Of a stretch of 64,000 bases of DNA, positions 1,004 to 45,106 are shown piece after piece (position 1 is the stretch's first letter; the number at the start of each line of letters is the position of its first letter). Where the stretch lies: assembly GCA_001643675.2 (NCBI GenBank), contig LSRY02000009.1:248001-312000 (forward strand), written 5' to 3'. The translations under genes were made by a program, and so were the position numbers. This DNA comes from Monocercomonoides exilis PA203. Its lineage: Eukaryota; Protista; Preaxostyla. The notes below the pieces were generated by a model. The model did not search any database. It was not told where the DNA came from and was given only the letters and a program-made list of their open reading frames with translations.

Positions 1004-1172
1004 TTTCTTCTTCTTCTCCTCCTCCTCCTTTATCTTCTTCTTCCTCTACTACTACTGCTGCTGCTGCTGCTGCTTCTTCTTCTTCTTCTTCTTCTTCTTC
1101 TTCTTCTTCTTCTTCTTCTTCTTCTTCTTCTTCTTCTTCTTCTTCTTCTTCTTCTTCTTCTTCTTCTTCTTT
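1004..1172. repeat. Compound trinucleotide microsatellite (TTC/CCT/CTA/CTG, then a long (CTT)n)
   Basis: Directly visible; explains the poly-F/poly-R pseudo-ORFs at 894-1254. Confidence 0.97.
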
Positions 1173-1865
1173 TAGTTGAAAAAACGGTATTTATTCCAAA
1201 TAGAAGCTGAAATAAAGGAGAAGAAAATAACATTGTGATAAGATGAACAATCAATCAAAAGAATAAAATTGGACAAATTGGCAGATAAGCTTAATTATCA
1301 CTCATAATAATCAGACAAAGAAAGAAACAAGAGAAATGATTATTTTTCATATGGGAGAAGATTGGGAAAAGGGGGAATATCTTTGCGTATTTCAAAATTG
1401 TGTAGTATTAAATAAAAACATTCATCGATGCATTCAAATTAAAAGCGAATCAATTTGCTTTTATTTTATGAAACATTTTAATTTTTGAACAATTGAAAAC
1501 AATAAAATAAAAAATAATTTTTCTGAATTTTCTTAATTTTTTTTTCAATTAAATTTCAAAGAATTTCATCAAAATGATTTCAAAACAAAAGGATAAGAAT
1601 GAAATGCGAAAATACTTAAACGGCATTTAACAACAATAATTTAAACAAAAAATTTAAAAATAAAAAATGAAAAAATTAAAAAATAAGATAATTATCTCAA
1701 TTATCTTATTTTCTCTTTATAATCTGCTTAACGAATCATTCAAAAAAAGACTTGCTTTCATTGAATGAATCAAAATTGCAAAGTGCATTAAAATATACAT
1801 AAGAATAGCATTTGTATTCTCTTCCAAAAAAATTAGAAGATGAAAAAGAAAAAAATAAATAAATA

Positions 1866-1914
1866 TGAAAATGAAAAGGAAAAGGAAAAGGAAAAGGAAA
1901 AGGAAAATGAAAAT

Positions 1915-2009
<95 letters not shown>

Positions 2010-2012
2010 TGA
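1866..2012. repeat. Hexanucleotide tandem repeat GAAAA(T/G/C), mostly (GAAAAC)n
   Basis: Directly visible; units shift from GAAAAG to GAAAAT to GAAAAC. Confidence 0.95.
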
Positions 2013-2233
2013 AATAACAAACCAATTAAACGAGAAAATAAATCACAACTTTCAAAAAAAAAAAATAGAAGCATTTTTAAGCTTAATAGTAAAAAATATG
2101 AAGAGAGAAGAAGAAGAAGAAGGAAAAAAATGAAGTGTCTGAAATTTAAACTTTAAAAAAAAAGAGAGAGAGAGAGAGAGAAAGAAAGAATGAAAGAGAG
2201 ATTAGTTTCATAACAAAAGCAATAAAGAGCCTC

Positions 2234-5719: not shown

Positions 5720-6500
5720 TCAAGAATTAAAAAATACATATAATAACATTTGCTGTGGAGGTGCATATGAAAACAATGATAGCTTAGACGAAGATGAAGA
5801 AGATGAAGATGAAGATCTTATCGAGATATCATATGTTGGATATATTTTAACAGAAGATATTCCCAACATCACAACCTCGCTCTCTGCTCCAGCAAGCCAA
5901 GCTTTGACGATATAGCCCAAAGACGAGGGTAAAGTGTCTTTAATAAATTCTTTTCATCTTCAATTGCAGTGAAAATATCCAGTCCATTCTCATTGTCTTG
6001 CTCAACAAAGATAAGATTGTTAATTTCAACAACAAGTCTGATTTCTTCCGTTTGGAAAAGATACGGATAGAAATATCTTCACATTATATAGATAAATACA
6101 AAATACAAACATGCTGATATTTCCATTCAAAATTTAAATTGTTGCATTTCGTTGTTCTTCCGATTACCAAAAATAAACAGAATGAACTTCCTCGTTCGCA
6201 ATGTTTTTCCAGTGATTGATGTAAGCATGTGAAATAATACAATAAATTCTGCAGGATAGATTCTTTCGCCAATCTCTCATCTTTCCAATGGATAATCTCG
6301 TTCAAAGAAAACAATTTGATCATTCAATCCATAACAAATAAAGAATAATCGAAAAAGCGTTGTTTTTCTCCATATTCGCTTGGCCAGAATGTCAACAAAA
6401 GAAAAAACAGTGTGAGCACGCATGTTTTATTTGATTGTTTTGAGTTTTTATTTTTCAACTATTTCTTCTATTCGATCATATATGAATTCGATGTGAATGG
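5720..6500 (-). pseudogene. Decayed coding remnant lying head-to-head with the helical-repeat gene (copy 1)
   Basis: Translates as ...GYIVKAWLAGAESEVVMLGISSVKIYPTYDISIRSSS. It is homologous to 9851-11040 and 25960-26670 and is broken by stops. Confidence 0.55.
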
Positions 6501-6553
6501 CTGAAATATTAATGCTTTCTTGAACAAATTTTTTTTCAAAAAAAAAGAAAATA

Positions 6554-8017
6554 ATGCATGATATGTACATCACAAAAATATTCAACAGTTTGCAATTGTT
6601 ATGCAAGTGAATATTTGTTTATTGCATTTTTTCTTTGTTTTTTATTGAAGAATTGTTTGACGAGCTTGAAGGTTGCAATGAGGAAGATCAGAAACAGAAA
6701 ATCGAAAAAATTAACGGACTTGCGGAGGAAATGGATAAAGAAATGTTTGATTCTGTTTTCATTACAGATCTGTTCGACAAAATTCAAAAAATGATTAAAG
6801 AAAAGAAATTGTCTTTTGAAAATGCATTATTTTTGCTGAAGCGCATTGGAAGGTGCTCATTGGAGAAAGATCTGAGAAGAACTTCTTTTTTTAGTTCTCG
6901 GCTGAAATGCAACTTTGAAAAGATGATTTTTGAAGAGCAGAAAAAAAAAGAAAAGAATGAAAGGCTTCAAATCGGTCTTTGTGAATGTTATCTTTTATTA
7001 AATTACGAATATATGGACCTTCCAGAAAGAGTGACTGAAATATGTGTGCGCTGTCTTTTGAAAGTCGCATTGTCGAAGGAGGAAAGTGAAAAAACTCAAA
7101 AAGAAGTGGAAATGGCGCTGCTGGCTTTGAGTTGCATTGAGTTGTATAATGTATGAATATTTCTATTTCCTTTTTGGTATTTTTTTGATTTTTTTCTAAT
7201 TTCCAAGGGTGTGGAAAATGAGCTGTATTTGAATGAGATCAAAGAAATAATTCAATATCACCAGAAATGCGGAAATCTCACACCTTTTGCCTATCAGTCT
7301 GCTTGGCTGTTTTTGATTTATCGATCTTTTTACGATGAGGATTTGGTAGCGGCCGTTGTTAATGAACTTCATTTTGTGGAAGATGCAAGAAGAGAACTTG
7401 GAGATCTGTCAAAGCGTGTGGATAGGAAGAGAAAAGAAGAAGAAAATGAAAAAAGAAGAAAAGAAACAAAAGAAGAGCTTCTTTTGATTCGATGGCTGCG
7501 AATGTTGGTGGTTTGTTTTTTCGACTGTAATTTGTGGAATGAAGAATCTTCTGTGATTATCGAAAGCATTGCAAGAGTATATGGAGAGGCAAGGGATGAT
7601 AACAGAGAAATTGGTAAGTGGAGCATTTATTTTTTTGAACGTGCAGCAGAACATGGAAATGTGAAAGTTGATACTTTGCTGAGAGGCGGTGCTGTTGATG
7701 CTGTTTTGGAAGAAATTCATCAAACAACGTTCCAAGAAATAAATGCAACTAATTGTTTGAATTTCTTTTTGAATATTTCAAAAAGATTGAAAAAAGAGGA
7801 GGAAGAAGAGGAGGATGAAGAGAAGGATGAATCAAAAAAAGATGAAATGGAAGAAGAGAAAAGAAAAGGGTTGAAAAGAAAAGTGCTTGAAAAGATGGAA
7901 GAAGAAGGATACGAAGATGTCATAATAAGCTTTCATAAAATATTCGATTTTCTTCACAGAAAATATTGGATAAATGTTTTATCATTGAATATTTCAGATT
8001 ATTTTGTGAGTGTTTGA
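6554..8017 (+). CDS. Lineage-specific alpha-helical (ARM/HEAT-like) repeat protein, paralog 1
   Basis: Three exons 6554-6587, 6651-7150, 7208-8017 with GT-AG introns (phase 1, 0) give MHDMYITKIFNKLFDELEGC...LCECYL...KEVEMALLAL...LYLNEIKEIIQYHQ...AYQSAW...KMEEEGYED. The fold is inferred. Confidence 0.88.
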
Positions 8018-8653: not shown

Positions 8654-11040
8654 TCAAACAGGTCGAAAAAAATTAAAACAATAACAAATCGCAAAATGAA
8701 CTTCATTTGGCTGAAATTGTTCCAGATGCCTGATTACGCATGTTATTCGCCCCTCCACATGAAATTCTATCAGTTGCAGATGTTGTTGTTCCTGTTGTTT
8801 TTGAGTCATTTCATTCACACCAAGAGAAGGGATTCGCATGATCGTCTGCCATCTGCTGTTTCCCCAACTTTTGCAGATTCCTTGCACTTCCATTGGCTGA
8901 AACGTTTCGAGAGCGATTGAGCCCAATGAATAAATTGCTTGAGGAGGAAAATAAAGGAGGAGAAGAAGAAGGCATATTCGACAAAGCAGCGGAGCTTGGG
9001 CTGAATGTGCAGAAGGACCTTCGTGTGTGAGTGAAGAGGAGTTCGCGACAAGAGATGAAGGAGTGAGGGGCTTTGGAGGAGTGCCAAAGAACAGATGAGG
9101 CAGACAATTGGGTGTGGAGCAAGAGAGAAAAAGGAGGAGAAGCAAATGTTGAGGAGGCTGTGATGTGTTGAGTGTGCAGCTGGGCAGATGAGAGTGTGCT
9201 GTCGAACAAGAAAAAATGTCTGCTGCTATTCATCTTCATCATTACCTCCTCCTTCTTCTTCTTTTCCACTTCCCCTCCTCCTCCTTTCTGTTGATGTCTG
9301 TGCAAGTCTTGTGTCGAAAGCGTCAATTTGCGATGTGTTAAACTCATCTTTCTCATTTGTTTTCATCTTTGTCTTAGGCTCTTCCTGTTGTCTTCCTTTC
9401 CTTTTCTCAGCTGTGTGCTCAATTTGCTATTAAAATCCACCTTCTTTGCCTCTTCCATTTGAACGCATCCTCCTCTTTCTTTGCTTCTTGACAGTTTCAC
9501 AAAATGAGAGCATGCGTGCGATATTGCTGGCAGCTCCTTCCTCCTTTTCATTTCCATTCACCCCATTCAGCACAGTCTGAGTGCAGAAGCCATATGAAAT
9601 GCTGAAGCAGAGTGGGATGTGCCACTGTGGAAGAGTTGAGCAGTTCAAATGCATATCCAGTGAAGCTGCAGAATGCATTGATGGTGATGACAACGAAGAA
9701 GAGAATAATGAAAAAGGAGGAGGAGAAGAAGAATTTTTATGAAGAAAAAGAAAAAGATTTAGAAGAAGAAAAATAAAAAGAAAAAGAGGAAGATGAACAT
9801 TTTTGGAAGAAGAAAAAGGCGAAGAAAATAATTGACAAGATATTGTGAATTTATAATTTTATTTGTTGAGGAGGTGCACATGAAAATAATGATGGCAAAG
9901 AAGAAGACGAAGACGATGCAAAAGGTGATGAAGAAGTTGTTATTGAAATATAAAATGTTGAATGTCTTCTAACTGAATGTATCCTCAGCATCGCAACCTC
10001 ATTTTCTGCTCGTGTGGATAACGCTTCTATGACATAAGGCTGAAGACAATGGTTAAATGACTCAAATCCATTTTGCCTGTCATTTATCTCGGCCACTTGA
10101 ATGAAGTCAAATTGATTGATTTTCTCAAATTTTTGGATTTTCAGCCAAACAATAAAAATTAGTTCCATTGCTCTTCCCAGCCCATAAAATCAACGCCTTG
10201 TCCTTCTCATCCCAAGAAAGTCGCCTTGTTCTGTTCCAACTTCTGCCAATCTCCTGTTTCGGTTATTTGTTCCAATCACTCCAATCAAAAAATTTTTTAA
10301 TGGCACCCTCTCCATATTCTAAAAAGGACTCTCTTTTCATAGAAACTGATCATTCTTTCTTTCTGTCTTTTGACGTCTTTCAATCCCGTGAATTTCCCTT
10401 CAATTAATATCCGTTTTTCATCGCATTTCCACATATTTCGCTTTGAGTCAACAATAATAGGTGAATATTTTTGAAAATAAAAAAGCAACCAGAATCAAAC
10501 GCATGATATTTATGAGGCAACATTTGACACTCTCCATTGTTATCTGCCCTGAAAAGAAAGGATTGGCCATTTCAATAATTCGTGATATTTCCGGGCTTTG
10601 AAAAGGATTCAGATGGAAATACCTTTTAAAAAGGGGGGGCAATAAAAGAATGAAAACAATAAGTTTCAAACGTTCAATAACTTTTATGTTGTGACTGCTT
10701 GGCCGCTCAAATGTGAAAAAAACTAGGAATCAATAAATCAAAACGAATATATCATCAACACGGAATGTTAATTCACAGGAAATAGTTGTTCTTATTCTAT
10801 TGGTATATTGAACGCACATATCCATTTTTAATAAAGAATATTTTCGTTCAAGGAAAACAATTCGATCAAATTATCCATTATAGCAAAGCGAATTGGAAAT
10901 AAAACGTTGTTTCTCTTCTTAATACTTTGTTGAAGATACTTGCGCATAGAATTATGGTGTGAATTCATAGATTTTTGCGATTATTTTGAGTTTTTATTTT
11001 TCATCTTTTTCATTTATCCAAACATATGCGAATTCAATAT
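8654..11040 (-). pseudogene. Decayed coding remnant head-to-head with helical-repeat paralog 2 (longer copy)
   Basis: 9851-10168 (PYVIEALSTRAENEVAMLRIHSVRRHSTFYISITTSSS...CAPPQQ) matches 5720-5920. 10850-11050 matches 6300-6505. Continuation to ~8650 rests only on coding-like composition. Confidence 0.4.
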
Positions 11041-11050
11041 AAATGGCTAA

Positions 11051-12498
11051 ATGAAATTGTTTTCTGGTTGTAATGCATTTTTGAAAAAGCAGCTGAATCA
11101 CATATCAAAAAGAGTTACAGGTCTGTTATTGTTGTTGCATTTGAATTCATGATTGTCACAATTTTTATCTTTTTTATTGAAGAATTGTTTTCTGAACTGA
11201 AATGTTGCAGAGAAGATGAACAAATGCAGAAAATAGAGGAAATGAATGAATTGATTAATGAAATGAATAGAGATGAATTCAAATCAGTTTTCACAAAAGA
11301 ACTGTTAAACAAAATGGGCAATTTGATTGAAGAAGAGAAAATGACGTGGGGAAATTCCATTTTGCTATTGAAGCATGTTGGATATTGCAAAGAGTTGAAA
11401 AATGTGAGAAGTCTTCATTTTGAAGAATCTTTATTAAACAAAAGATTTAAGATAATGATTGATGCTAAAAACGAGAAAAAAGAAGAAGAAAATGAAAATT
11501 TGCTGATTAATCTTTGCGAATGCTATCTTTTGGTTAACATGGGATTTTCATCGAAAATCATTACTATATGTGTGTCTTGTCTTGTGAAAGTTGCATCAAA
11601 CAAGGGGGAAAACAAAACAATTCAAAAAGAAGTGGAAATGGCTTTGTTAGCTTTGAACAATCTTAAATATCCTGTTTGTACATTTTCACTTTCTTTTTGA
11701 AATATATATATATATATATTTGATTAGGAAATTGAAAGAAAACTATATTTGAATGAACTCATAGAGATTATCCAACATCACCAGGAACATCACAATTTGA
11801 CACGACTAGCCTATCAGTCTGCTTTCCAGTTTTTGGTTAACAGATTACGCAAAGAAGATAAAATGGAAGACTTGATTGTGAATAAGCTGCATTTTATCAA
11901 AGAGGCAATAAATGAACTGGAATATCTGACAAACTATTTGGATGGGAAAGGAAAAGAAGAAGGGAAAGGAGAAAAAGATGAGAAAGAAAAGCTTCTTTTG
12001 ATTCGATGGCTTGTGACAGCTGACGATTATCTTTTGAACTGTCAAATGTGGAATGAAGAAACCGTCGAACTTATTGGCAACGTTGCTCAGATCTTTCAAG
12101 CAGCAAAGAATAATAACAGTGCAATTCGCAGACGGTGCATCTATTTGTTGGAAACAGCAGCGTATAATAGAAAAGTGAACATTGAAGACTTGTTTCAATG
12201 CGGAGCCATTGATCTCATGTTGGAGGAAATTCATCAACAAACATTGAAAATCAAAATATTATTTGTATGCTTGAAATTTTTTACGCATTTTGCAATTCGA
12301 TTGAAAGAAGAATGGAAAGGTCAAAAAATGAAAACGAAAAGAAAAGAGTTTAAAAGGCAAATCTTCGACAAGTTAGAAGAAGAAGGATGCGAAGACATCG
12401 TCACAAGCTTTCATGGAATTTTAATGAATTTTCTAAAATATGAACTTTATTATCAATCATTTTTGCAGAATTTTTCTGATTATTTTTTTTATGCTTGA
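11051..12498 (+). CDS. Helical-repeat protein family, paralog 2
   Basis: Exons 11051-11120, 11183-11673, 11728-12498 with the same intron positions and phases and the same motifs (ELFSELKCC, LCECYL, KEVEMALLAL, HHNLTRLAYQSA, KLEEEGCED). Confidence 0.85.
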
Positions 12499-16643: not shown

Positions 16644-19472
16644 TTAAGTTCGAGCAGGTGCAATAGCAGCAGTGAATGATAAAGGAGTTTCTTCTGGATT
16701 CATAGCTCTGATGAAGTCCTGATACCCAATGTCCTCCGCATCTCCAAAGAAGTGCCTCTCCAACAGCTCCATCTCGGATGTCTTCTGCAGCACACCATAC
16801 TTAATCATCTGGTCTCTGAATCTTTCTCTTGACAGGCGCGGTGTCTGCTTCTGTGTGAATGCATTGAATGCCTCCGTCAGCGACGCGTGCTTCAAGTTGA
16901 TTCTTTCCACTGCCTTCATCATAATCTGCTTCTCCTTTGCCAGCCTCTTCCTGAAGTCTGCCTCTGACTCTCCTTCCAGCAGCGTCCTTTTGATTGTCCC
17001 TGTCATCACACCCGATGAATGTGGCACTGCTTTCACAAGTGAAGGCGACGGCTGTGTTGCTTTCCCCACCGGCCCAAACGCCCTCGTCGTCAGCGTCAGC
17101 TCGGAATGGTCTGTTGGCTCCAGAGACACCGACGACGTTGCCAGTGTTGCGTCTCTCACCCCCACTCCGCCTGCCCCACTCATCGACACCCCCATCCGTC
17201 CGCCTGGTCCAAAGCTCCGTGTCTTCGAGCCTGTAGCGTCAGTCACTGTGATTGTGCCTGGCGTGATGGGATGCACATGCAGCGCTGCATCTGTCTTGAA
17301 CAGCGTGCCATCCATAATTCGTGGCGCCTCTCTGATCGCTTCGCGGAAGGCAGTAATGTCCAACTCCGGCTCTTCTCCTTCTCCTCCTTCAGAATAGCCT
17401 GAAGATGAAGAGTTTCCATACACTTCAGCCAGCGCCTGCATCTCAAGCTGTGTTGGCCCCACCTGAAACGCATCCATCATCTGCTTGAACTTTGTCAGTG
17501 TGGCTGTCTTTCCTAACTTGTCAAATGCCTTGTTCGCCCTCTGCATGTTGTAGAGGTCTGACAGCCGCAGACGATATTCTGCCTCAATCCTCACTAAATC
17601 TGGCTCTGGACAGCCCATATCGCTCTGCATCTGCATCGTCTTCGAGTCGCAGTCCAGCAGCACAAAGCGCCGTGTCCGTATTTCAAGCACTGCCCCCACA
17701 AAGAAGTCGCCAGGGCCATAGTACACGTTCGAGTCTGGCTTGTACATCTTCGTCCGCTCCATAAACTTGCCCTGCACGTAGCCGATGTTCCTCTGCGGCG
17801 GCTCGTAAATCGAGAGCGTGTCGTCGCTCAGATGGAACGTCAGTACAAAGCGCCTTTCTGACTCGCCTGGAGACGCTGTCTCGATTCTGCACAGGAAATG
17901 GAAGGCGTCCTTGTCCTTCACCAGCAGCTTGAAGTAGTCTCTCGGCCACGGCCTGGGCTGTATGTGGAAGCACGTGGCGAGCGAGTCCAGCTCTTCTCCG
18001 AAGCCCAAATACGGCGGGACCTCTCTGTCTGCCGTGGACGTCTCCTCTGCCCCGAGTGGAAGAGGATCCATCGGATCAGTCACACCCATGTTCTGCTGGT
18101 ACCAGCGCCGGGTGAAGTCGTCGCAGTCGTACAAGAGAAACGTGCGCCCGAAGATGGTCACCTCCTTCCCAATCATCAGGTCCTCTGGCTGCATCGGCTC
18201 ATACGCCGTGTCGGAGTGGTGCAGATGCGCCACCCCGTCTCTCGGCACACTCTGCCTCCGCACAAACGACGGGAACGCCTCGTGCCCGCTGTTCGCCTTG
18301 CGCAGCTCGACGATCTCGATGGTGTTGTCAGAGAGGAAGTAGTGCAGTGCGAAGAAGCGCTGCTCGCCAAACATCGTCGCGTCGTTCCACACTGCGTTGA
18401 ACCTCAGCACCTGTCTGTCGTACTTCAGGAACTTCTGCGTCGTCGTGTCTGGATCGCGCACCGTCACTCGGATGTGCGACTCGATCTTCTCTCTTTCCTT
18501 TGCATGCGCGTCTGAGGGCAATGGCTCTCTTTCGCTCAGAATTTTACCGTACTCCTTTTCGAGATACTCTCGTGTCGAGCCATTGGCATCGTATATGTGG
18601 AACAGTCGCCCGTATATGCGGACATCCTTCCCAACTTCCAAATCGTCAAGCTCAATGCACCCAGAATCTGGATCGCGCTCATCACGCGGAACGCGATGGC
18701 GACGCAAAAACGTTCCTTGAACAATTCCTGAATTGTTCTGCTTGTGTTCAACAACACTTATGGTATCGTCTTCAAGATAAAATAGAATATCAACATTTCT
18801 CACTCTGTAAACTTCTTCCCGCGATTCATGTACAGCCTCTATTGTTTGTTATATATATTTTTATATTATGTTTATGTTCAATAAGAAATATCGTTCAAAA
18901 ATTTCGATTTAAAAAAGAAAAAAAGGATTGGTACCTTTGAAATATGCATAAAAACACATAACTAACTTATCATATGCAATAAAAGATGGAATTGTTTCTG
19001 CAGTTGGAGGTGCTGTTGTTCCAGTTGCTGAAACAATTGTTGTTCCCCTTGATTTGATATCAGGACCACCAACAGAGCTGTATTCCAAGCATTTTCTTGT
19101 CCATCCAAATGTAAAATCTCGTGACTTTTCCAATTCTTCAGAGCTAAATCTTTCATCAATAGTGCGCCGGAATTCATTTCCTATGGATGGATAATCCAGT
19201 TTTGCAGTTGGAATTCCATCTTTGTATCCAAGTGTGTGCGACTTTGCAAAATTGGTTTTCTTAGAAATATTAATTGTTGTTTTTTCAAAACGATTTTGTT
19301 TCCATTATGAATTTAATGGTTAAGAGAAATATTAAAAACATAATATATAATTGAGCTATTAAAAAGAAAATGCAACCTTTGGATCTGTAAATGTCGTGCC
19401 AGGAAGAAAAGGCAGCTTAACCTGAGCCTTTAAATTGTCATCAGCAGACAATTTTTCAGTTTTATAAGACAT
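16644..19472 (-). CDS. EFHC1: EF-hand domain-containing protein 1 / Rib72-like axonemal microtubule inner protein (three DM10 domains plus a C-terminal EF-hand-like region)
   Basis: Exons 19472-19377, 19259-18935, 18838-16644. N-terminal LPFLPG motif. DM10 signatures YDKLVMCFYAYFKEAVHES..FYLEDDTISVVE..NSGIVQGTFLRRHRVP, YDRQVLRF..HYFLSDNTIEI, and RRFVLTFHLSDDTLSIYEPPQRN.G..QGKF. EFHC1 versus EFHC2 is not resolved. Confidence 0.93.
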
Positions 19473-21878: not shown

Positions 21879-23315
21879 TCAGCAAAAAATAAAAAAGTGT
21901 TCGAAGGTTTCAGAACCTATTAAATAACTTTTCATTCTTTTAAATCTGATAATATTTTCTTCATATCCATCTTCTTCCAACTTTTCAAACATTTCTCTTT
22001 TGAACTTCACTCTTTTCGTTTCATTGAAGTCTTCTTCCTTTCCCTCATTTTTCTTTCTGTTCAAACTTTTAACAATAATCGAAATCATACTGAAGCAACT
22101 CGATGTTGAAGTGTCATCAAATGTTGATTGGCTAAATTCTTTCAAAATGAGATCAACTGCTTCTCCATTCAACAGCTCATAAGCATTGACTCCTCCTCTA
22201 AATGCTATTTCTTTTAAAAGATCGATTCCGTTCGAAAATATTTTTTTGTCTTCATCTTCAAATTCTTTACACAACTTCACCACGCTCCCAGTCAAAGCAG
22301 CAAGTCCGTTTTCTTCATTCAATGCAGAATGATAAACAAATCGGAAAAGCGTCTTCATCCATCTTGTAATCTCCACTTTTCCACATTCTTTTGCATTCTT
22401 TTTCGTGTTTTGCAAATGTGCGCATTTTGATAGTTCTTCCAACTCTCTCGTTGCTTCTCCCACAAAATGCAGCTCACTCACAATCACTTCTTCCAAGTTT
22501 TTGTCATGTTTCAATCTGTTGATCAAAAACTTCCAAGCAGACTGATAGGCAAGACGAGTAAGGCTGCGATGTTCCTGATGATATTTGATGATTTCTTTGA
22601 TCTCTTCCAAATACATTTTTTTATCTATTCTCTTCAAAATACAAGAAAAAAAGCAAAAATATAAAAAATAAAAAACAACGACTCATACATTTTGAGCCTC
22701 AATGCAACTTAATGCTAGCAAAGCCATTTCCACTTCTTTTGGTTTTTCTTCATTTTCCATTTTCTTAGAAACAACTCTCAAAAGGAAAGGCACGCGAATA
22801 ACAACTATTTCAATTGAAAAAATGTCTTGTGACAACATCAGATAACATTCGCAAAGATCAACAAGAAGCTTTTCATTCTTTTCTTTTTTCTTCTCTTCTT
22901 CAACGATAATTTTTTCAAACCTTTTTCGCAATAAAGAAATACAAAAACTTGAGTTGAATATGCTCTTCAATGTCGCGCAACATCCAATGTTCTTCATCAA
23001 TTCAAGCACATCTTCCATCGAAAGTTTCTTTTCTTCAAACATTTTTTCCATGCTGTTGAATAATTCTTTTGCCATGATAGAATATAATTCTGCAAAATTC
23101 ATTCCAGGAATTAATCCATTCATTTCTTCTATTTTCTGTTTTTGCTCTAATGCAGAGCAATTTTTCAATTCGTCAAACAATTCTTTGAGGTTCATTTTGT
23201 TTGAACAATGCTTTTAAAAAAACAAACATATCCAAAGAAAAATGAGCAAACTGATAAATTTTTCTTTCGGATTCGTCTCCTCAATATAATCTGCAGATTT
23301 GTTGCAATCACTCAT
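21879..23315 (-). CDS. Helical-repeat protein family, paralog 3
   Basis: Exons 23315-23252, 23182-22689, 22631-21879 give MSDCNKSADYIEETNPKEKFIKLFDELKNC...LVDLCECYL...KEVEMALLALSCI...HRSLTRLAYQSAW...KLEEDGYEE. Confidence 0.87.
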
Positions 23316-24488: not shown

Positions 24489-25913
24489 TTAAACATTCAC
24501 AAAATAGTCCGATGCAATTAATGATAAGCTGGGATAACAATTTCTATTAAGGAAACCAAACTTTTTTTGAAAGCTAATGATAAAGTCTTCATGTCCTTCC
24601 TCTTCCATCTTTTCAGATATCTCCATTTTCATAACCTTTCTTTTCGTTTTTTCCATTTCATCAACCATCTTCCTTTTCAATATTTTTGAAATTGTCAAAA
24701 AGAATCTCAAACAATTGTGCGCTATGTCATGTTTCAAAGTTGCTTGCTGAATTTCCTCCAAAACAACATTCGCTGCTCCACTCTTCGTTAAATAATCCAC
24801 GCAAACTGTTTTTGTTTGTGCTGCTGTTTTAAAAACCAAAATGCACACTATTATTATTTCTTTTTCATGTTCTCTTGCTGCTCTGCACAGAGCGACAATG
24901 CAACGAATCAGCTCAATATGCTCTTCATCCAAAAACAGACGTTCACGAAAATAAGCCATTACCATTCTGAGCCATTCCATTATGACGCTCACTTCTTTCG
25001 CTTCGCTTCTCCTCGCCTCTTTCTCCTTCCCTCCTTTTCTCTTCCAATTCACACATTCCCTCAGCTCATCCAATTCTCTTGTTGCTTCTTTCACAAAATG
25101 AAACTCATTCAAAATGACGTCTTCAAATTCTCCTTCTCGTTGAAGTCTCAGTATCATAAACTTCCAAGCCGATTGATAACCAAGTCGTGTCAAATTCCGA
25201 TGTTCCTTGTGATATTCAATGATTTCTATAATCTCATTCAGGTAAATATCTGTATTCACTCTCTAAAAAAAATAAATAATTGCAACTCCAAGCAAATAAA
25301 GTGAAGGAAACTTCAAACCATTGTCGTTTCAATCAAACTCAAAGAAAAAAGAACCATTTCTACTTCATTTCGTGTTTCTTCGTTTTCCAGTTTATGAGAA
25401 GCAGCTTTCAAAAGGCAAGGCAAACAAATCGCAATCAATTTGTCTGGAATTATGCACTGGTTTGTCATTATATAGCACTCGCAAAGATCGATAAGAAGCA
25501 TTTCATTCTTTTCTCCTTTTTTCTCTTCTTCTTTAATAATCATTTCCTCGATTCTTTTAGGCAGCAAAGAATGGAAAGAGCTATAGCAACGAAAGTTTTT
25601 TAATTTCTTGCAATAACCAATGTGCTTCAACAGAAGAATTGCAGCTTTCAAATTAATTCGTTCTTCTCCAATCATTTTATCTATTTTATTGAATAGCTCA
25701 ATCGTGAAAACAGATTTGCATTCATCTTCATTCATATAGTCCACCAGACCGTTCATTTCAACAATTTTCTGTTTCTGATCTTCCTCATCGCAACCTCCAA
25801 GCTCGTCAAACAATTCTTCAATAAAAAACAAAGAAAAAATGCAATGAACAAGAATTCGCTTGCAATAACAATCGCAAACTATTGAACATTTTTGTGTTGT
25901 CTGTCTCCTGCAT
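24489..25913 (-). CDS. Helical-repeat protein family, paralog 4
   Basis: Exons 25913-25880, 25815-25319, 25262-24489 give MQETDNTKMFNKLFDELGGC...LIDLCECY...HRNLTRLGYQSAW...KMEEEGHED. Confidence 0.88.
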
Positions 25914-25959
25914 TTTTTTTTAAAAAAAAATTGTTCAAGAAAGCATTAATATTTCAGCC

Positions 25960-26670
25960 ATTCACATTTAATTCGCATATATTTGGATAAATGAAATAGA
26001 TGAAATAAAAAAACTCAAAACAATCAAATAAAACACGTGTGCTCACACTGTTTTTCCTTTTGTTGACATTCTGGCCAAGCGAATATGGAGAAAAACAACG
26101 CTTTTTCGATTTTTCTTTATTTGTTATGGATTCAATGATCAAATTGTTTTCTTTGAACGAGATTATCCATTGGAAAGGTGAGAGATCAGCGAACGAATCT
26201 GTCCTGCAGAATCGATTGTATTTTTTTTCATGCTAACGTCAATCACTGGAAAAACATTGCGAACGAGGAAATTCATTCTGTTAATTTTTGGTAATCGGAA
26301 GACAAACGAAATGCAACATTTTAAATTTTGAATGAAAATACCAGCATGTGTGTATTTTGTATTTATCAATATATTGTGAAGATATTTCTATCCGTATCCT
26401 TTCCAACGTGCAGGAATCAGACTTGTTATTGAAATTGGCAATCTTATCCTTGCAGAGCAAGACGATGAGAATGGACCCGATATTTTCACTGCGATTGGAG
26501 AGGAAAAGAATTTATAAAAAGGCACTTTTCCCTCATCTTTGGGCCATATCGTCAAAGAATTGTCTGCTGGAACAGAGAAGGAGGTTGTGATGTTGAGAAT
26601 ATCTTCTGATAGAATATATCCAACATATGACATCTCGATAAGATCTTCGTCTTCTTCTTCATCATCTTCT
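25960..26670 (+). pseudogene. Decayed partner remnant head-to-head with paralog 4
   Basis: Inverted homolog of 5790-6500; reads YPFQRAGIRLVIEIGNLILAEQDDENGPDIFTAIGEEKNL*...GHIVKELSAGTEKEVVMLRISSDRIYPTYDISIRSSS. Confidence 0.55.
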
Positions 26671-36436: not shown

Positions 36437-37470
36437 CGCAGGCTAATCAACTTTTCTGTTTGATAAAATTAAATAATACTTTAGATCGACATAATTCGTT
36501 TGTTTGAAAATGTTCATTTGTGAAAAATATTAGATTCATTGTGCAAAACAGTGATGTTAAATTGAAACAGCAATTCATTTTGATCATTTTTTTGGATGAT
36601 AACTGAGATTCACAACATTTTGTAATGTTTTATTTCGTTTTTGTTGAACAATTTGATTGAACATATTGATGAACTGAAATAATTATAAATAACATTTTAA
36701 ATTAGTTTTCGAAAACATGATGGTTATTTTTCAGAAAATAAAAAGAAATGAAAAAAGCTTCAAAAAAACTCAATATTTAGGGTCAGAAATTTATCGGTAC
36801 CCAAAAAATTAATCGGGACATAAATTTTCTGGCTCTCCAGAGCACTTTTAGAAAAAAGAAATAACAGAAAATTATTAATATATTATAATATACAATTTCT
36901 GAATATATTTTTTCATATTTTAATTTTTGTGAAAAGATCTGGTGTTTTTTGTTTTATTTTTCAGATCATAGACTTGCTCGTATTTTCACGTGCTTTTTGT
37001 TTTGAGATTTTTAAGTGTTGTTATTGTTTATAAACTTGATTTCTTTATAATTTTGGTTATTTTTTGTTATTAAACACTTCGTTTTTTTATTTCTTTTTCC
37101 ATTTCACTAAGTTTCGACAAATGGAATAGGGTCATCTTTTTTTTTGCACTTTTTTCTTTATTGGTTCTTTTGTTTAAAACATATTTTTTTTTCAACAAAT
37201 GATATTTTAAATAAATATTTTTAAAATAAAGACAATTATCGTGTATTCCAGTTTTCGAATTTTGAAAGAAATCCAATTTCTCATGGGGGGGAAATGGGGG
37301 GGTTCAAGTCCTTCCATTGAGCTTTCATGAGAAATTGGACTGCACAAAGGTTTGTAAATAATTCTTATTCATTCAAAAATTTTAATATTAATTAAAAATT
37401 CTTTAATGAAAATTAAAAAATAAAAAAATATATTTATGATCATTTTTATATTATTTATATGTTATTTTTA

Positions 37471-37848
37471 GTGAAAAAGAAAGCTTAAGCTGCGTAGAAG
37501 CGACTGAAGGAAGCAATGTTTTCATTTCAGAACAGAAAATATAGTTCAAGATTTGAAAGGATTGCACACATTGTTAATGACAATGTTGTCAGGCTGGTCG
37601 ACGGGGTTAAATATGGCGGAATCAGCAAAAAATCTTTGGAGCACGCAGTTAAAGCAATAAAAAACGGCAGACCGACTGCAAAAGTTGGGCACCCGCCAAT
37701 TATCAAATGCGAAAAAGAAAAGCAATTCTTGGAAGAAGTTACAATAGAACCTCGATCTGGGACAAGCCTCACATTACGAAAAGCGCGCGATCTGGTTTGT
37801 AATTGATATTTGAATTGAATATTAATTGGTATTTAGATGGAAAATATT
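37471..37848 (+). pseudogene. Pogo/Tigger-type transposase, 5' part (HTH region) with a 42-nt intron
   Basis: ORF ...GRPTAKVGHPPIIKCEKEKQF...LRKARDL, then phase-0 intron 37795-37836 (GT..AG), then MENI up to the insertion site. Confidence 0.75.
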
Positions 37849-40271
37849 GGCATAGGTCTATTTTGTACCAGTTTGGAAAGGCTTTTTAAAATATTTTTAT
37901 TAACATATTATTAATTCTCATAATTATTGCAAACAAACTGCTGATGGAAAATCGAGTAATTCTTCCATCAAAAACTTGATATTTTTTCTTTTTTTCTCAA
38001 CCCATAATTCTAACTTTTAGATCACAAAGAATAAAAAATTCAATTTCCTGGCTTTACAAAGTTCAGGACAACTTCACAATTCAATGTTCAAAGAGAGAAT
38101 AATATTTTTATTGTTTGGATAATCGAACTTTCACATCTATTGTTTATAATGATGTTATTTTTATTAAAATTATTATTTGAATTATTCAATAGTCTTAGCA
38201 AAATAATGGATGTTTCATTTAATAAATTATCGAAAGACTCTATTTATAAAGGTAAATGTTTTATTTATTGTGAAAAACAGTTTGCAATGAAATAATAATT
38301 ATTGGAACATTTATTATTTTTGTTTTTTCATTCTGTGATAAACATTGAATTTATATGAAAGATAGATATAATTGCTGCTTTTGTAAGTAGTTAATTGTTT
38401 GCAATGGGAGAGTGAGAATGGCGAAATAGGGACATTGGAAGAAAAGATGAAGAGGATGGAAGAGAGGAACACGTTGAGAGAAGATATTTAAGGAATGGAT
38501 CTATTCGACAAGATAGTGGAATAAAAGAGGAAATAAAAGAAGAAGAAGAGATGAACAGCTGGAATTCGGCTTCAAGACGTCTCGTTGGAAGAAGGAAAGC
38601 AGGAAACCAGTAAAGCAGATCTTTTCATGTATAGTTTTTCTGGGAAGAAAGAATGGCAGTGCAGAAGGAAGGAAGGAGGGACATTCAATGCATTGGGAAA
38701 ATGAGGTTATGTATTTTTGAGCTTTGTTTTTGTGTTGAATTTTGAAGGAATGTTTTGTGAAAGAAAAAATAAGAAATATAAGAGAAGAAAGAGATGTAAT
38801 ATTCAAATGATAGATGTCGTAATGTGTTTGAGTGTGAAAAATCCGTATTCTGCAGAAATGTTGGTTTAACCTTCGGCGAGCCTGTTGGCGATGGAGGAAG
38901 TGGAAGAAGCTGCTCATTTCGGAGTAGAGACAACAGAAAAAGCAGGCAGAACGAAAAGAAAAGAGAGAATGATGAGCCGGAGTTTATGGGGAGTGAAATC
39001 GATGAAAGAGAATGCACTTTTAAAGTCAGCAAACAAAGATGAGGATATTTTTTAAGAGCACAAGCCTCATGGAGCAGCAGATGGAGTCGAAGACGAAATA
39101 TACGAGAGAGCAGGGGCAATTTATTTTGGAAAAGCGAGAAATAATAATCAAAGGAGATATAAAGGATTGGAAGTGTGAAGTCTGTTGGTTCGAGAGAAAG
39201 AAGAGGAGGAAGAAAAGATGGAAAGAGAAGGAAAACGATCATTTGAAAGATGCGACGTTGGGACGGATGGCAATCAACTCAAAAATCCACAAAAATCGTC
39301 AAGTTTTTTTGTGGATGACTTTCAAAATCTGTTTTCTCTAATTTTTAATTCACTTCATTTATTTCTTTTTTCATTCCATCTTCTTTTTATGTTCTTATCC
39401 AATCAGAACTCATCTTATTCATCTCAAGTTTTTCAGATTCTGCATTTTGCTGTAAGTTTACAGAAAACTGTATTATGGCATTGTTCATGTGTTTTGTTTT
39501 GCCATTGAAAAATTTTCATTTCTAAATTTTTGAAGAATTTTTTCGTTTAAAAAAAGAGATCGGGAAAAGTTCAATGAATGACTTGCGCACATATGTTATT
39601 TGAAATAAAAAACGAAAAACATGTAGAAAAAGGATTTGCAGCCAGGAACAGACATGGTACATGGCACCATCTGAGGGATGTGACTCGATCCTTGAGGTGG
39701 TACGGGTGCTGAGCCTCTGGGCTGACTGGGAAATGGGGCAGCGATTTATCGGCCAGAGGGCTGTGCCTGTGCATGGAGCATGTTGTGATGCCTCTTTCTA
39801 CGCGCTGTGTTGCTAATATGTTGTGGTAGGGTTGCATGAGTGGGCTTGTGGGGCAGCTTGGTGTCGGTGGGTGTCACCGTTTCCTTTCAGAATGTTATCT
39901 TTTCAGCCAAACTGGTGGAGGTGTGCCATTTTGTTTGCCTCACGAGGGAGCCGTTGACGTGTTGCACCTTTTTTATTTCTATTTTTTTGGATTTTATTTC
40001 TCAGCAGGGCGCAGCTGGGGATGTTTCGCCACAGAAGAATTTTTCGATGATCCGGGCACCTGGGTGAACCAATACAGCGGGGAAGGGGATGGGAGCAATG
40101 GAAACAGCGATTGGGAGGGGTGTAAGGAGAGACGAGGGGCTGCAGCAGAATTTTGTTTTTTCATCTCAAATGCAGTTATTGGCAGCTGTGGCAGCGCAAG
40201 CACAAATACGGATGATTTTATTGGATGACCTTCTTCAGGCCTGGGATTTGCCGTTATTTCAGCCAGCATAA

Positions 40272-41990
40272 TTATTTCGACTCCAACTGCCCACTCGTCA
40301 CACTGAACAGCGTCGTTGAAATCGAAGAAAGAGAATTCGTCCCAATCACACTCGCTGCTTTCCCTCTCCCCAAAACAGAAATCTTCTTTTCCCCAACATT
40401 GATCGTCGCCCCTTCGCTCACATGCCTTCCACCCAGCACTGTGATTGTCGAGCTCAGCTGCGCCATGCTCGACTCCACCGCATGTCCCACTGTCTTGCAA
40501 GGTGCAGACTCGCTCATCCCACACAGATTGCTCGTGTCACTTCCACCCACCCCAACATACCGATCCTTCATCCCTTCCTTCAACCATCCCTTCTTTTCTG
40601 TATGTTGAAGGCTATTACCATTATAGCACACTCTCCTGTTATCACCATTCGTTGTGTACGATTCGTAGAATGGGTTGTATGACGAAAAGAGATTGTTATT
40701 GTCTTGAAAATACACATCGTGGCCATATGGAGTGGAAGCGTTGCAACTGCAGTCATGGAAGAAGAAGAAATAACAATAAATGTTGTTGCTAGGAGCTATT
40801 TGTTGGTTTGGATTGAAACACAATCCTCCGCCATATGATACAGCTGAGCACGAAATAAATTGGAGACTCCTCATTTTGAATGCAGATGGAACATTGTAAC
40901 AATACATCCCTCCACCACTTGAATATGTTAGAGAGCACGAAGTGAATGAGCACCCAAACACGCAAGCGCTCTCTCCTTTGCCGCTTTCTGTTCCAATACA
41001 CGAAGATCCAGAAACATTAAAATTTTCGAGATAAAGGCCTCCTCCGACGCTATTCGCTTTGCATTTCTGGAATTCGCATCCACTGATCCTGACACACGAA
41101 GTAATATAATAAGCATACATCCCTCCTCCGTAATCTTTTTGAGCAGTGCATGCATTGAACGAGTTGTTCTCAATCTTGACTGAATTGAATAGCAAAAAAT
41201 TCCTCCCCCAGCATAATGCGCATAGCAGTCATTGAAAGAACAAAATTTCACTGAAAGCGTTCCCGATCCCAGGTTATACATGTTAATCGCACCTCCACTC
41301 GATACCCCATCTGAATAAGAACCACTTGTTCCAGTGGTTTTTGTGCCATTCCACACACACCAAGTGAATGAATTTGCCTCATTGTCTGCTATCTGCTGTC
41401 TCGCTGGTTTCGAAGGATTATCTTCACTCCCATTGACTGCAACATTCTGTGATCGATAGCACCTGACAAACGAGGTGTTCGAGGCATCCAGGGATGATGA
41501 AGGGCTGTTCAGAGAAGGAACAATTCCACCATCATACACATCACAAACAGACAAAAAGGAGCAACTATTCATTAGATATGGTGTTTGGTGAAAGGATGTG
41601 GTCGGAGTTGAATATGCCTCATTTGCTGTTGAAATGTTGAAAAATGATAATTTGGAGAGGGACATAAGGGATATAGATGGTGAAAAGAAGAATGGGGAAG
41701 AAGATGAGAAACGCGATTCACTCACTGAAATTCTTCCTTCTCTTTTGATTTTTTGACCATACGCCTGTTTTGCATCTCCGCGCTATGTAGCAAAATATTT
41801 CCGAAAGTCAGATCCTTTTACTATCTCTCCTGCTGAAGACGATTGGCTTCCATTAAAAGCAGAAAAGCATCTTTTTTCTTCAATGCTTCTGAACGGAAGC
41901 AACATTCCAACATTCTTCATCATTTGCTTTTTTCCAAAATCACTTTTTCAACTGTAACCATCCTCTGCCTTCTTTCTATATTCCATTCAC
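40272..41990 (-). pseudogene. Captured, frameshifted and 3'-truncated fragment of a beta-helix surface-protein gene
   Basis: ORFs 40928-41725 and 40272-41195 join by a frameshift (GGGIFCYSI/NSVKIENNSF). Motifs GGAINM, FFFFHDCSC..GHDVYF and CGMSESAPCKTV are shared with the 28637-36436 family. It ends abruptly at 40272. Confidence 0.85.
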
Positions 41991-42544
41991 ATTCTTCGCT
42001 TTTGAATATTCATCCAAAAAATTCTTATTGTCATAAAATAATTATAAAAAATAAATGATAAAAAATCATTCAAAGAAAAATATGAAAAAAATATTACAGA
42101 AACATCAAAGGATTAATTTTGTACAAGAAAAACAAAACAAATTATACAGCAAACCTTTTTATTTTGAGTTTTCTTCACACACTTTTTCTTCCTCGTCGTT
42201 TCTTCTCCTCCTCCGACTAGTATTTCTTCATCCCTCCAATTTCAATCTCAAAACCCTTCTTCTCCATCTCCGCTTTCTATCTCACGGCCAATGAAATTGG
42301 TCCTCTTCTGCTTCCAAATTTTGTTTATTTCCTTTTCTCAGCATAGCTTCCAGCCAAATAATTCCAACAGCCAAAATAATAAAAATAGACGATGACGACA
42401 ATATAATAGAAGATAACAAAACAGAAATAGAAGATATAAATGAAGATGAAGAAGACGAAGAAGACGAAGAAGACGAGTCTGAAGGAGATGAAAAAAATAA
42501 AAGGAAGAGAATAAAAATACTGCAGAGCAGAGAATAAAAGCAAA

Positions 42545-43010
42545 ACAGCTCCTGTTCCAATCACGTTCTTCTCTTTGCCCATTCCAATAACTGAAATCTT
42601 CTTTGATCCAATCTCAATTGTTGTTGTCTCGCTTATGTGATTCCCATCCATCAGCGTGATTGCCAAGCTAATCTGCACCTCACACATCTCAAACGCTTTC
42701 TTCACTGTCAGACACGGAAATGTTGTATATGCCCCACACAGCTCATATGAATCATTTCCATTCATTGAAACATATATCGTCTTGTCTTTCAGCCAATCCT
42801 TTTTCATTGATTGATCATATGTCCAGGCACTTGCAATTGCATAATTGTATGCATAGCACACCCTCTGGTCGTCTGTGTTTGTTGTGTAGCATTCATAAAT
42901 TGGATTGTCTGAATTCAAAAAGACATTGTTATAATCGACATAATTCGCATCGTGGCCAAGTGGAGAATCGGCTGAGCATTTGCATCCGTGGAAGAAAGGG
43001 AAACGACAAT
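42545..43010 (-). pseudogene. Second captured internal fragment of the same surface-protein family
   Basis: FFHGCKCS..GHDANY...YECYTTNTDDQRVCY...DWLKDKTIYVS..CGAYTTFPCLTVKKAF...IGSKKISVIG, paralogous to 40330-40780; no start and no TM. Confidence 0.8.
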
Positions 43011-43732
43011 AAATCATATTGAAAAGTTGTGTAAGCTTTTTGTTAAAACACAACTTAACGATATTCGATGATGATGAATAAAAAACAAACAATTGATCCA
43101 TATTTTGCACAGAAAAAGGTAATTGCTGAAATCCTTTTATCCTCCTCTGAAAGTTGAAAAAAAAAGTGATGCTAACAAAAAGATAATATGAAAATGTCAT
43201 TCACTTAAACACACAATTGCTGAATCATCAAAAAAAAACGATAAACAAAAAAAGAATGAAAAAACATGTAAAAATTCATATATTATCAATGCAAATTAAT
43301 AAACATACTATAAATCTGATCATTAAAGGGGAACAACATATTTCTGCTTGCGTCATATCAGTAAAAAAATTTGTTAAGGTGAACAAAACATTCAAATGTG
43401 TATTTTTTCATATACTCTACATTCAAACATTCATCGGTCTGTATTACTTCAAATAAAAACAAGGAAATTGTCAATGCAACAATGTCAAATATGATCAAGT
43501 ATCATTTCATTAAAATGGCATTGTAATGAAATCTTTTTAAATAGATCATGATCAAAAAGATAAAATTATGGGTTGAGAAAAAAAGAAAAAATATCAAGTT
43601 TTTGATGGAAGAATTACTCGATTTTCCATCAGCAGTTTGTTTGCAATAATTATGAGAATTAATAATATGTTAATAAAAATATTTTAAAAAGCCTTTCCAA
43701 ACTGGTACAAAATAGACCTATGCCAAAATATT

Positions 43733-44820
43733 ATTAACGATAGTGAAGAAGAAGGAGAAAAAGAAGAAAAGAAGAAAAAGACAGTCACTCTGAAGATTGT
43801 TCACGAATTCAAAAAGCGCCATTTGGAATTGAAGTCGTCGCTTCCAAAGCAAGTTGATATTAACAGACTTGCAGCATCTTGTCAGAAAGTCCTAAAGCCG
43901 TGGTTTGCAAAATTAAAAACATTACACGACGAAAATCAATATCACGAGGAATTAATCATCAGTGTCTACGAACCTTCGCTTAGCATTCCAACTTCTTCAC
44001 GTGGCGTTGTTGTTCATCCTGCAGATGAACAAGCTGGATTCAAAAAGACTGCAGAACGGATGCCGAATGCTACTCTCGTTGCTGTATTCGCTGCTGATGG
44101 CTTCTCTCTTCCTTCTGTTGTGCTGTGTCCAAGTGAAACTCTTCTCAAAGAACTGGCGATGCAATTAACACAGTCACTTGAAATTTTCCCAAGCACAAAC
44201 CGCTGGATGGCAAGGAAGTCTTTCAAAAAATACACCTTAACAGTATAGCTGCCAGCTATCATTGACAGAAGAAAACGTATCTTGAAGGAATCTCATCGTT
44301 TCTTTCTTCTCCTGGACTCGAACTCATCACGCGCTGATCCAACTATATGGAGACAGTTCAAGGAAACCGAAATTGACGTCGTCACCTTCGTTCAACATTC
44401 TACACATATTTCGCAACCGCTGGACAGAGGAGTATTTGCAGTATTGAAGTCAGAGCTATCAAACAATTACAGCTCTCCATTATCCACCTCCTTATCAGCA
44501 AAAAGAACAGCTGTTGCAGATGTGTTGCCACAAGCCCTTCACACTGCATTCATTCTATCGGTGATCAAAAAAGCCTTCATTAACTGCGGAGTCCTCAGCA
44601 GTGGATCTGGATCGATTCAAATGAAGCTTCCTCAGTCTTCTCAATACTTCATTCCTTCTCATTCTCATTGTTTCGACTTCTTTTGAAAAGAAATAATAAA
44701 AAAAAAGCTTCTTGACGAATGAGGTGAATATAATGAAAAACACAAGATGTCAATTAAAGAAAATATGGAAAAAGAAAAAGAAATTGAAGAAGAAGAATTG
44801 CTTTTGGGAAAAAAAAGTTG
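43733..44820 (+). pseudogene. Pogo/Tigger-type (DDE_1) transposase, 3' part
   Basis: INDSEEE..VHEFKKRHLELK..VDINR (CENP-B HTH-like), AADGFSLP, RWMARKSF, in-frame TAG at 44246-44248, LLLDSNSSR, HSTHISQPLDRGVFAVLK and KKAFINCGV. Confidence 0.88.
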
Positions 44821-44930
44821 AAAGGGCATTCAAAATAATAAAGAATGATGGTGATAAAATAAGTGATGAATTTAACCCCTTTGAACGTGAAAACAGAAAA
44901 AGAAAAGCGAAAAGAGTAATTCATTTTTAT

Positions 44931-44936
<6 letters not shown>

Positions 44937-44970
<34 letters not shown>
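44937..44970. repeat. Poly(T) tract
   Basis: Directly visible. Confidence 0.9.
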
Positions 44971-44975
<5 letters not shown>

Positions 44976-45106
44976 CTTTTTTCTTTTCTAAAAATTTTGA
45001 TGCCAATAAAGAAAAAAGTGCCAATAATAATATGAACCTGGAAATGTCCTCATTTTTGAAAATTTTAATATTTGAAAATCAAATTCCAATGTCTTTTTGT
45101 TCATTT

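Follow-up and report, generated by a model that had tools for sequence, protein, structure and literature searches.

The element and its insertion site

The 64-kb stretch considered here, from the genome of the gut protist Monocercomonoides exilis PA203 (contig LSRY02000009.1, positions 248,001 to 312,000; the window) carries a transposable element of 5876 bp at 37849-43724, bounded by terminal inverted repeats (TIRs) and loaded with broken pieces of host receptor genes, its cargo (Table 1). Coordinates given without a contig label are positions in the window, and labels such as C7, C18 and C27 denote contigs of the M. exilis assembly (82.3 Mb, 101 contigs). The TIRs start with GGCA, are exact over 161 bp and run on imperfectly to ~176 bp at 98%, and among lengths of 2-14 bp the sole exact flanking duplication is AAAATATT at 37841-37848 and 43725-43732. 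These repeats and the 8-bp target site duplication (TSD) had been described in an earlier account made from the letters alone (the sequence-only reading) and are exact in the sequence, as is the reported lack of a recognisable transposase: neither a Merlin profile search over all frames of the window nor a Pfam search of the three cargo open reading frames (ORFs) returned one. An Rfam search for structured RNA in the element gave no match.

The element splits a multicopy pogo/Tc1-like host element, whose DDE_1 domain (PF03184) lies at 44282-44683 (E 1e-8) and whose own inverted ends are imperfect and 37 bp long. Deleting the element and one 8-mer in silico yields an unbroken reading frame running into DDE_1. 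With up to 3 mismatches allowed, a genome search for the empty junction gave 32 matches, against 0 for a control pattern, and the empty form is visible in contigs from two DNA runs as a loose end at 37847. The continuous host frame, the 32 empty sites and the 8-bp TSD together identify a true insertion into a multicopy pogo-like element. A probable 42-bp GT-AG intron of the host gene precedes the insertion site at 37796-37837; the host element itself has at least 32 relatives, and a clean target duplication at its own ends was not seen.

The element is thereby confirmed as a real, recently moved, non-autonomous transposon of Merlin type. Its recent mobility, already suspected from the sequence, is indicated by the identity of its backbone with that of a sister copy and by the intact TSD. 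Perfect TIRs are no evidence of age, since the two arms are 98.7-100% identical within an element but only 83-97% identical to the nearest other copy, and are thus homogenised within most elements.

Table 1. Parts of the element and of its insertion site (positions in the window; residue numbers follow MONOS_15597)
Feature	Position	Strand	Remark
Host element: multicopy pogo/Tc1-like DDE_1 transposase element, split by the insertion	37128-45039	+	
Left TSD, 8 bp, AAAATATT	37841-37848	+	32 empty homologous sites hold a single copy
Left TIR, 161 bp exact (~176 bp at 98%), 5'-GG Merlin-type end	37849-38009	+	
Backbone ('purine-rich debris'), no recognisable gene	38010-39460	.	Holds small converted patches
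GC-rich block: degenerate continuation and 3' flank of truncated receptor gene	39607-40271	-	
Receptor fragment 1	40272-41770	-	Ectodomain residues ~115-617 of a ~2000-aa member
Spacer: low-complexity gene tail, intergenic DNA, degenerate gene start	41780-42543	-	
Receptor fragment 2	42544-43089	-	Residues ~441-601 of a different paralogue subfamily
AT-rich subterminal backbone	43090-43563	.	~83% to C27-type element
Right TIR, 161 bp exact	43564-43724	-	
Right TSD, 8 bp	43725-43732	+	

A family of copies with a shared core

The TIR is not confined to the window. A genome search returned at least 30 matches, and ten elements with both ends could be paired and examined; five of them have exact 8-bp TSDs, all distinct, and a sixth matches at 7 of 8 bases. 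Copies of the family sit at unrelated sites and include three of a 5.9-kb type and at least seven of a 3.4-3.8-kb type. Comparison of cargo among copies, which had been proposed as a check, showed that the layout differs by subfamily. Copies of the 3.4-3.8-kb type hold one receptor piece from ~residue 375, a GC-rich block and a variable backbone, while the 5.7-kb copy on C27 holds a longer, internally deleted receptor gene from ~residue 413 together with a transposase remnant. The 5.9-kb type, consisting of the window copy, the C18 copy and a one-ended C80 copy, combines in order a C27-type end with fragment 2, the spacer, a longer fragment 1 and a C23-type half.

Several copies have been altered secondarily or repeat the choice of target. 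The 6.1-kb copy on C7 (C7:1101942-1108081) is a 3.4-3.8-kb type enlarged by a nested pogo-like insertion, which lies in its cargo at positions ~947-3503 of that copy. The insertion is 2.56 kb long and TA-flanked, its TIRs measure 43 bp and its DDE_1 frame 513 aa; this ORF was considered as the family's own transposase and ruled out because it belongs to the nested insertion. In the C80 copy (C80:673900-679121) a long TCT/TCC microsatellite replaces the left 676 bp, so that the end is either lost or lies past the expansion. A family member on C46 (C46:638687-642388) likewise splits a DDE_1-like transposase frame, and pogo-like genes are the target in two of the ten insertions.

The cargo of every copy shares one core piece with a near-common start at ~residue 375-441, and all recognisable cargo across the copies derives from a single receptor family, with no unrelated captured genes met. 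Since one ancient piece is common to all copies, the core cargo was inherited and not captured anew by each copy, and the 5.9-kb type is one that gained a single host segment over this shared piece. The Pack-type capture put forward in the sequence-only reading therefore stands in part: host gene fragments lie between TIRs and a TSD and are mobilised with the element, but fresh capture in each copy does not fit a shared core.

Affiliation with Merlin and possible sources of transposase

The Merlin superfamily was reportedly set out by Feschotte in 2004. Its definition comprises 5'-GG ends, an 8- or 9-bp TSD and TIRs of 24-462 bp (PMC8101967), and the element agrees with it on all three. The M. 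exilis genome contains more than 100 Merlins in seven families (F1-F7), with TIRs mostly of 23-29 bp (PMC8101967, Lopes et al. 2021); the M. exilis section of that paper reports no cargo, and the words 'passenger' and 'non-autonomous' are absent from its searched text.

The strongest link to Merlin comes from transposase remnants. A genome profile search gave at least 150 PF12762 matches, and a looser end pattern recovered 160 sister-family ends. One of these, on C69, adjoins an ISXO2-type transposase that is no longer intact (PF12762, 38 bits, exceeding the cut-off) and that in turn matches decayed remnants in two members of the window's own TIR family, with E 2e-25 on C27 and E 2e-26 on C69. 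The TIR family thus includes copies in which the remains of a Merlin transposase lie next to a receptor gene truncated at its 5' end, so that the lineage descends from Merlins with a receptor passenger. Judged on these sequence characters, the element is filed as a non-autonomous Merlin (IS1595/ISXO2) and not as a Mutator-like element (MULE), and the choice between Merlin-like and MULE-like ends that the earlier account had left falls on the former. Long TIRs and an 8-bp duplication could also denote a MULE or a hAT element, and TIRs so far beyond the 23-29 bp of most M. exilis Merlin families (PMC8101967) would suit that assignment; we give it next to no credence, however, as the native transposase traces in the TIR family are solely of ISXO2 type (no genome-wide MULE or hAT search was made) and the GG ends, TSD and TIR length all lie inside the Merlin definition.

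A candidate for an active partner is the 6.9-kb sister element C40:833747-840620, whose ends match those of the window element at 17 of 20 bases and which holds a related predicted transposase in a stop-free 518-aa frame, known from its coordinates only. The autonomous relative suggested earlier has thus been found in part, as decayed transposases in two family members and a predicted frame in a sister, but not in the element itself. An 11.4-kb element on C7 contains both a transposase and a receptor match. Merlin elements of 7.8-8.4 kb with the transposase at one end also occur (C69:1176266-1184065, C21:186551-194386 and C10:773399-781851), and in the first of these a receptor gene on the opposite strand faces the transposase. 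A sister family of short non-autonomous elements, with ~20 end pairs 2.3-2.45 kb apart, is larger than the window's family, and its C12 copy carries a receptor piece resembling fragment 2. This short family was rejected as the autonomous partner because it has only ~112 bp of TIR in common with a transposase-bearing element and no transposase match, and the ten best PF12762 loci were rejected because their ends, where found, are unlike the window TIR.

Origin of the cargo

The relatives of the cargo are all from M. exilis and are single-pass proteins of ~2000-3400 aa, mostly with a C-terminal PF07714 kinase, which is present on most of the 120 full-length relatives listed. One of them, MONOS_3094, has a transmembrane-like segment at 1784-1811, and its region homologous to the cargo was modelled as a right-handed beta-helix (predicted local distance difference test, pLDDT, 87.9) that aligns with a beta-helix glycoside hydrolase at Z 18.8 and a root mean square deviation of 4.4 over 267 aligned residues, so that the beta-helix label first given to the family is borne out on a full-length relative. 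The domain layout suggests that the receptors act at the cell surface. The transmembrane segment and the kinase domain are both absent from the cargo.

Two fragments of this family had been noticed at the outset and are recovered by profile search (41770-40272 and 43089-42544), although the limit of 41990 first given for the longer one took in degenerate upstream sequence. Fragment 1 has a frameshift near 41180 and a terminal stop, and is a patchwork of host paralogue variants. Fragment 2 shows 47% identity to the proteins nearest fragment 1 and is also present in the C27 copy with the transposase remnant. The GC-rich block, earlier called unknown, continues the truncated gene into its 3' flank and keeps a weak trace (E 0.2) of a downstream receptor segment on the + strand at 39758-39961. 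What had been taken for purine-rich debris is element backbone, since its 23 matches lie mostly in TIR-bounded elements (six are unassigned) and neither a host gene donor nor a protein was found for it: no decayed transposase was detected by Merlin profile, receptor profiles or Pfam, and a 341-aa antisense-type ORF in this block of the C21 copy had no match in the protein database. The backbone at 38010-39460 is shared with C18 (96%), C80 (98%), C23 (91%) and a sister-TIR element on C33 (87%).

Host loci of the donor class have been located for parts of the cargo. Four such loci, in host clusters of C80 and C71, match the spacer from end to end at 88-90%. Fragment 1 joined to the GC-rich block is present at eight loci of C42 and C80, with 83-85% identity. 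The homologous points of fragments 1 and 2 lie 2.23 kb apart, which is the unit offset at C71. The cargo can therefore be traced to loci at 83-90%, but not to a single near-identical parent. In an end search these C42, C71 and C80 loci, known by their coordinates, lacked the TIR ends of the window's family. Receptor clusters on the same three contigs contain many inverted pairs with near-equal scores, which suggests genome-wide homogenisation of inverted repeats. The window also contains a 2599-aa single-ORF member of the receptor-kinase family with a C-terminal PF07714 (28637-36436, - strand), 1.4 kb from the element; as it is only ~25% identical in the cargo region, it is not the donor.

These loci bear on the view that the element is an active vehicle of Pack type, in which each copy would take up fragments on its own and pass reshuffled pieces back to working surface-receptor genes, thereby driving the diversity of the family. 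The different layouts of the 3.4-3.8-kb, 5.7-kb and 5.9-kb subfamilies would agree with it, and so would the C42 and C80 host loci that share the gene piece with its GC-rich block and MONOS_14581, which ends just past the common truncation point and could represent write-back, conversion being in principle bidirectional. Nevertheless this view is unlikely: the core piece and its near-common start, found in all copies, argue against independent capture, and the cargo is truncated and frameshifted. Moreover, the shared host loci extend further 5' than most elements and stop before the backbone, a pattern more in keeping with a parent than with a recipient, and a search with the purine-rich block found no host gene containing element backbone.

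Rewriting of the cargo by host paralogues

The backbone and the cargo of the 5.9-kb copies differ to very unequal extents. Over ~2.4 kb of backbone the window and C18 copies are separated by seven isolated substitutions (0.3%), whereas the interval 39470-42067 contains 633 differences; elsewhere the differences form dense clusters of 5-24 per 11-72 bp. Cargo identity among the three sister copies ranges from 57 to 90% and changes in sharp patches; C18 and C80, for instance, are 99-100% identical over 39950-40950 and 41650-43650 and only 62-78% between. The 3.7-kb pair C21/C17 repeats the profile, with 90-100% identity outside the cargo and 74-88% inside.

The character of these differences points to host paralogues as their source. 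In this broken gene they are biased to third positions, with dS reaching 0.95 and a ratio of nonsynonymous to synonymous divergence (dN/dS) of 0.25-0.37. At 180 of the 187 positions that differ from C18 (96%, against 19-29% expected), the window residue is seen in at least two host paralogues. When the divergent tracts are scanned in windows of 30 residues, some host paralogue mostly lies nearer to a copy than its sister copies do, and the top paralogue shifts along the sequence. In trees of the three 5.9-kb copies with the 11 closest paralogues of each, the C18 copy nests over a 137-residue stretch in a different host subfamily (support 100/99), and the approximately unbiased (AU) test rejects a single clade for the cargo of the three sisters (p-AU 0.0008). 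The sharp paralogue-like patches, the low dN/dS and the conserved backbone together suggest segmental gene conversion in which host paralogues serve as templates and replace the cargo sequence. Patches within the backbone follow a sister element, and with the homogenised TIR arms they indicate that conversion may act wherever a homologous template exists. The flow demonstrated by these comparisons runs from host paralogues into the element, which is thus the recipient.

Divergence of the cargo in place, through targeted hypermutation or selection on an expressed fragment without templated replacement, would account for the failure to find an exact donor and could be linked to the RNA-run contigs that cover parts of the element. 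It is highly improbable given the third-position bias and dN/dS of ~0.3 in a broken gene, the 96% of changed residues that are existing family variants and the position of the C18 copy in a different host subfamily (100/99); furthermore, transitions are about as frequent as transversions in both cargo and backbone.

It is also very unlikely that the mosaic is an artefact of assembly or polishing, with paralogous short reads written in by Pilon or contigs jumping between copies. The assembly did pass through ten rounds of Pilon polishing (PMC8767320), at most 72% of sampled element words were found in public runs and no record spans the element. Against this, contigs from DNA runs match window-specific cargo without differences at 40140-40262, 41489-41643 and 41750-41875, those of an independent RNA study do so at 41007-41109, and backbone read depth is ~3x single-copy, as expected for three copies. 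The TSD and the unbroken host frame link both flanks, and the same pattern recurs in other subfamilies. An explanation of the frameshift near 41180 by a one-base homopolymer error was rejected, as such an error would not restore the frame and a short-read run is gapless there. RNA coverage of the backbone is low and insufficient to show transcription.

It is therefore likely, in our assessment, that the element is a non-autonomous Merlin with inherited receptor cargo that has been overwritten by host paralogues. Some points weigh against this interpretation. Two of the divergent tracts have no near-identical donor (best matches 88% over 600 bp and 88% over 96 bp, with 40 candidates scored for each), and a single recent donor for such tracts was not found, which implies that the tracts are finer mosaics or that donors have changed or are missing. 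In addition, no read or contig spans the whole element, and only coordinates are available for the proposed partner transposase and for the donor loci.

Proposed history and implications

In the simplest history, a 5'-truncated receptor gene would have been captured long ago by a Merlin that subsequently lost its transposase, its descendants being mobilised in trans by a sister Merlin with near-identical tips, for which C40:833747-840620, with its predicted enzyme, is the candidate. The 5.9-kb type may be a recombinant that joins a C27-type end and a C23-type end around a ~2.2-kb host unit (gene tail, spacer and the start of the next gene), and this unit could have been copied out of register from a receptor array, with homologous cargo sequences as anchors. 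The element entered the pogo-like gene by cut-and-paste transposition with duplication of 8 bp. After the spread of the three 5.9-kb copies, their cargo appears, from the pattern of differences, to have been overwritten in tracts of ~10 bp to 2.6 kb, possibly through ectopic segmental gene conversion or template-switch repair.

The broken cargo is most likely without function for the element, which would serve mainly as a sink and recorder of a conversion process that affects the whole family. The three sister copies provide an internal clock, in which ~0.3% of point changes in the backbone stand against the rewriting of about half of the element from paralogues, so that it becomes possible to measure how fast ectopic conversion proceeds, and how long its tracts are, in the largest gene family of the genome. 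This offers a testable route for how the receptor family diversifies. It also calls for caution, as neither perfect TIRs nor gene trees of the receptor family can serve as a record of age or orthology. A more far-reaching possibility, rather unlikely at present, is that segmental conversion acts on receptor ectodomains in the manner of the trypanosome variant surface glycoproteins (VSGs), with Merlin elements as mobile archives that would receive and donate tracts, spread templates to new chromosomes and diversify expressed receptors.

Other features of the window

Inverted paralogous blocks of a gene family lie at 5790-7967 and 24536-26669 (up to 90% identical over 607 bp), with related pieces at 10972-11933 and 22426-22919; their ORFs have no Pfam match. 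A 719-aa protein with three DM10 domains is encoded at 16644-18803 (- strand) and is presumably an ordinary axonemal protein of the EFHC/Rib72 kind.

Comparison with known systems

Segmental gene conversion in surface-antigen families such as the trypanosome VSGs yields mosaic sequences, in which short tracts derive from numerous paralogues and pseudogenes. The cargo resembles them in being a short-tract mosaic, but differs in that it belongs to a silent or low-expressed transposon, with no expression site or programmed switch shown.

The Merlin families described from the same genome (PMC8101967) share GG ends, an 8-bp TSD and, in relatives of the element, a DDE_Tnp_IS1595 transposase, but mostly have short TIRs around a transposase, in contrast to the 161-bp TIRs, host-gene cargo and missing transposase found here. 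That paper was the only relevant result of a literature search for Merlin with Monocercomonoides, and no paper on cargo-carrying Merlins was found in the literature searched.

Plant Pack-TYPE elements (Pack-MULE, -CACTA, -hAT, -PIF and -Mariner; PMC8903248) are likewise non-autonomous and multicopy, with TIRs, TSDs and host fragments from more than one locus, whereas the present cargo comes from a single family, was passed down from transposase-bearing ancestors and has been rewritten in place by paralogues. In animal Pack-TIRs, gap filling or FoSTeST (PMC8277862) offers a parallel, as a template switch into a TIR element and its subsequent transposition would account for the extra 2.2-kb host unit; however, their pieces have a median length of only 224 bp and are mostly single-copy, recurrent overwriting guided by homology is not described, and 'gene conversion' is absent from the text of that paper. 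Merlin is mentioned in neither of these papers (PMC8903248, PMC8277862). With the element, Pack behaviour is extended to a metamonad and to a further superfamily, Merlin, an extension not found in the literature searched.

Passengers of bacterial transporter insertion sequences (ISs) are usually intact and selected, unlike the broken eukaryotic receptor fragment carried here. The IS1595 family is the bacterial sister group of Merlin, and its transporter ISs and mobile insertion cassettes (PMC3129680, citing the IS1595 family paper) combine a transposase with a passenger that transposase-less derivatives keep. The element resembles the passenger-carrying ISs of Merlin's own bacterial relatives.

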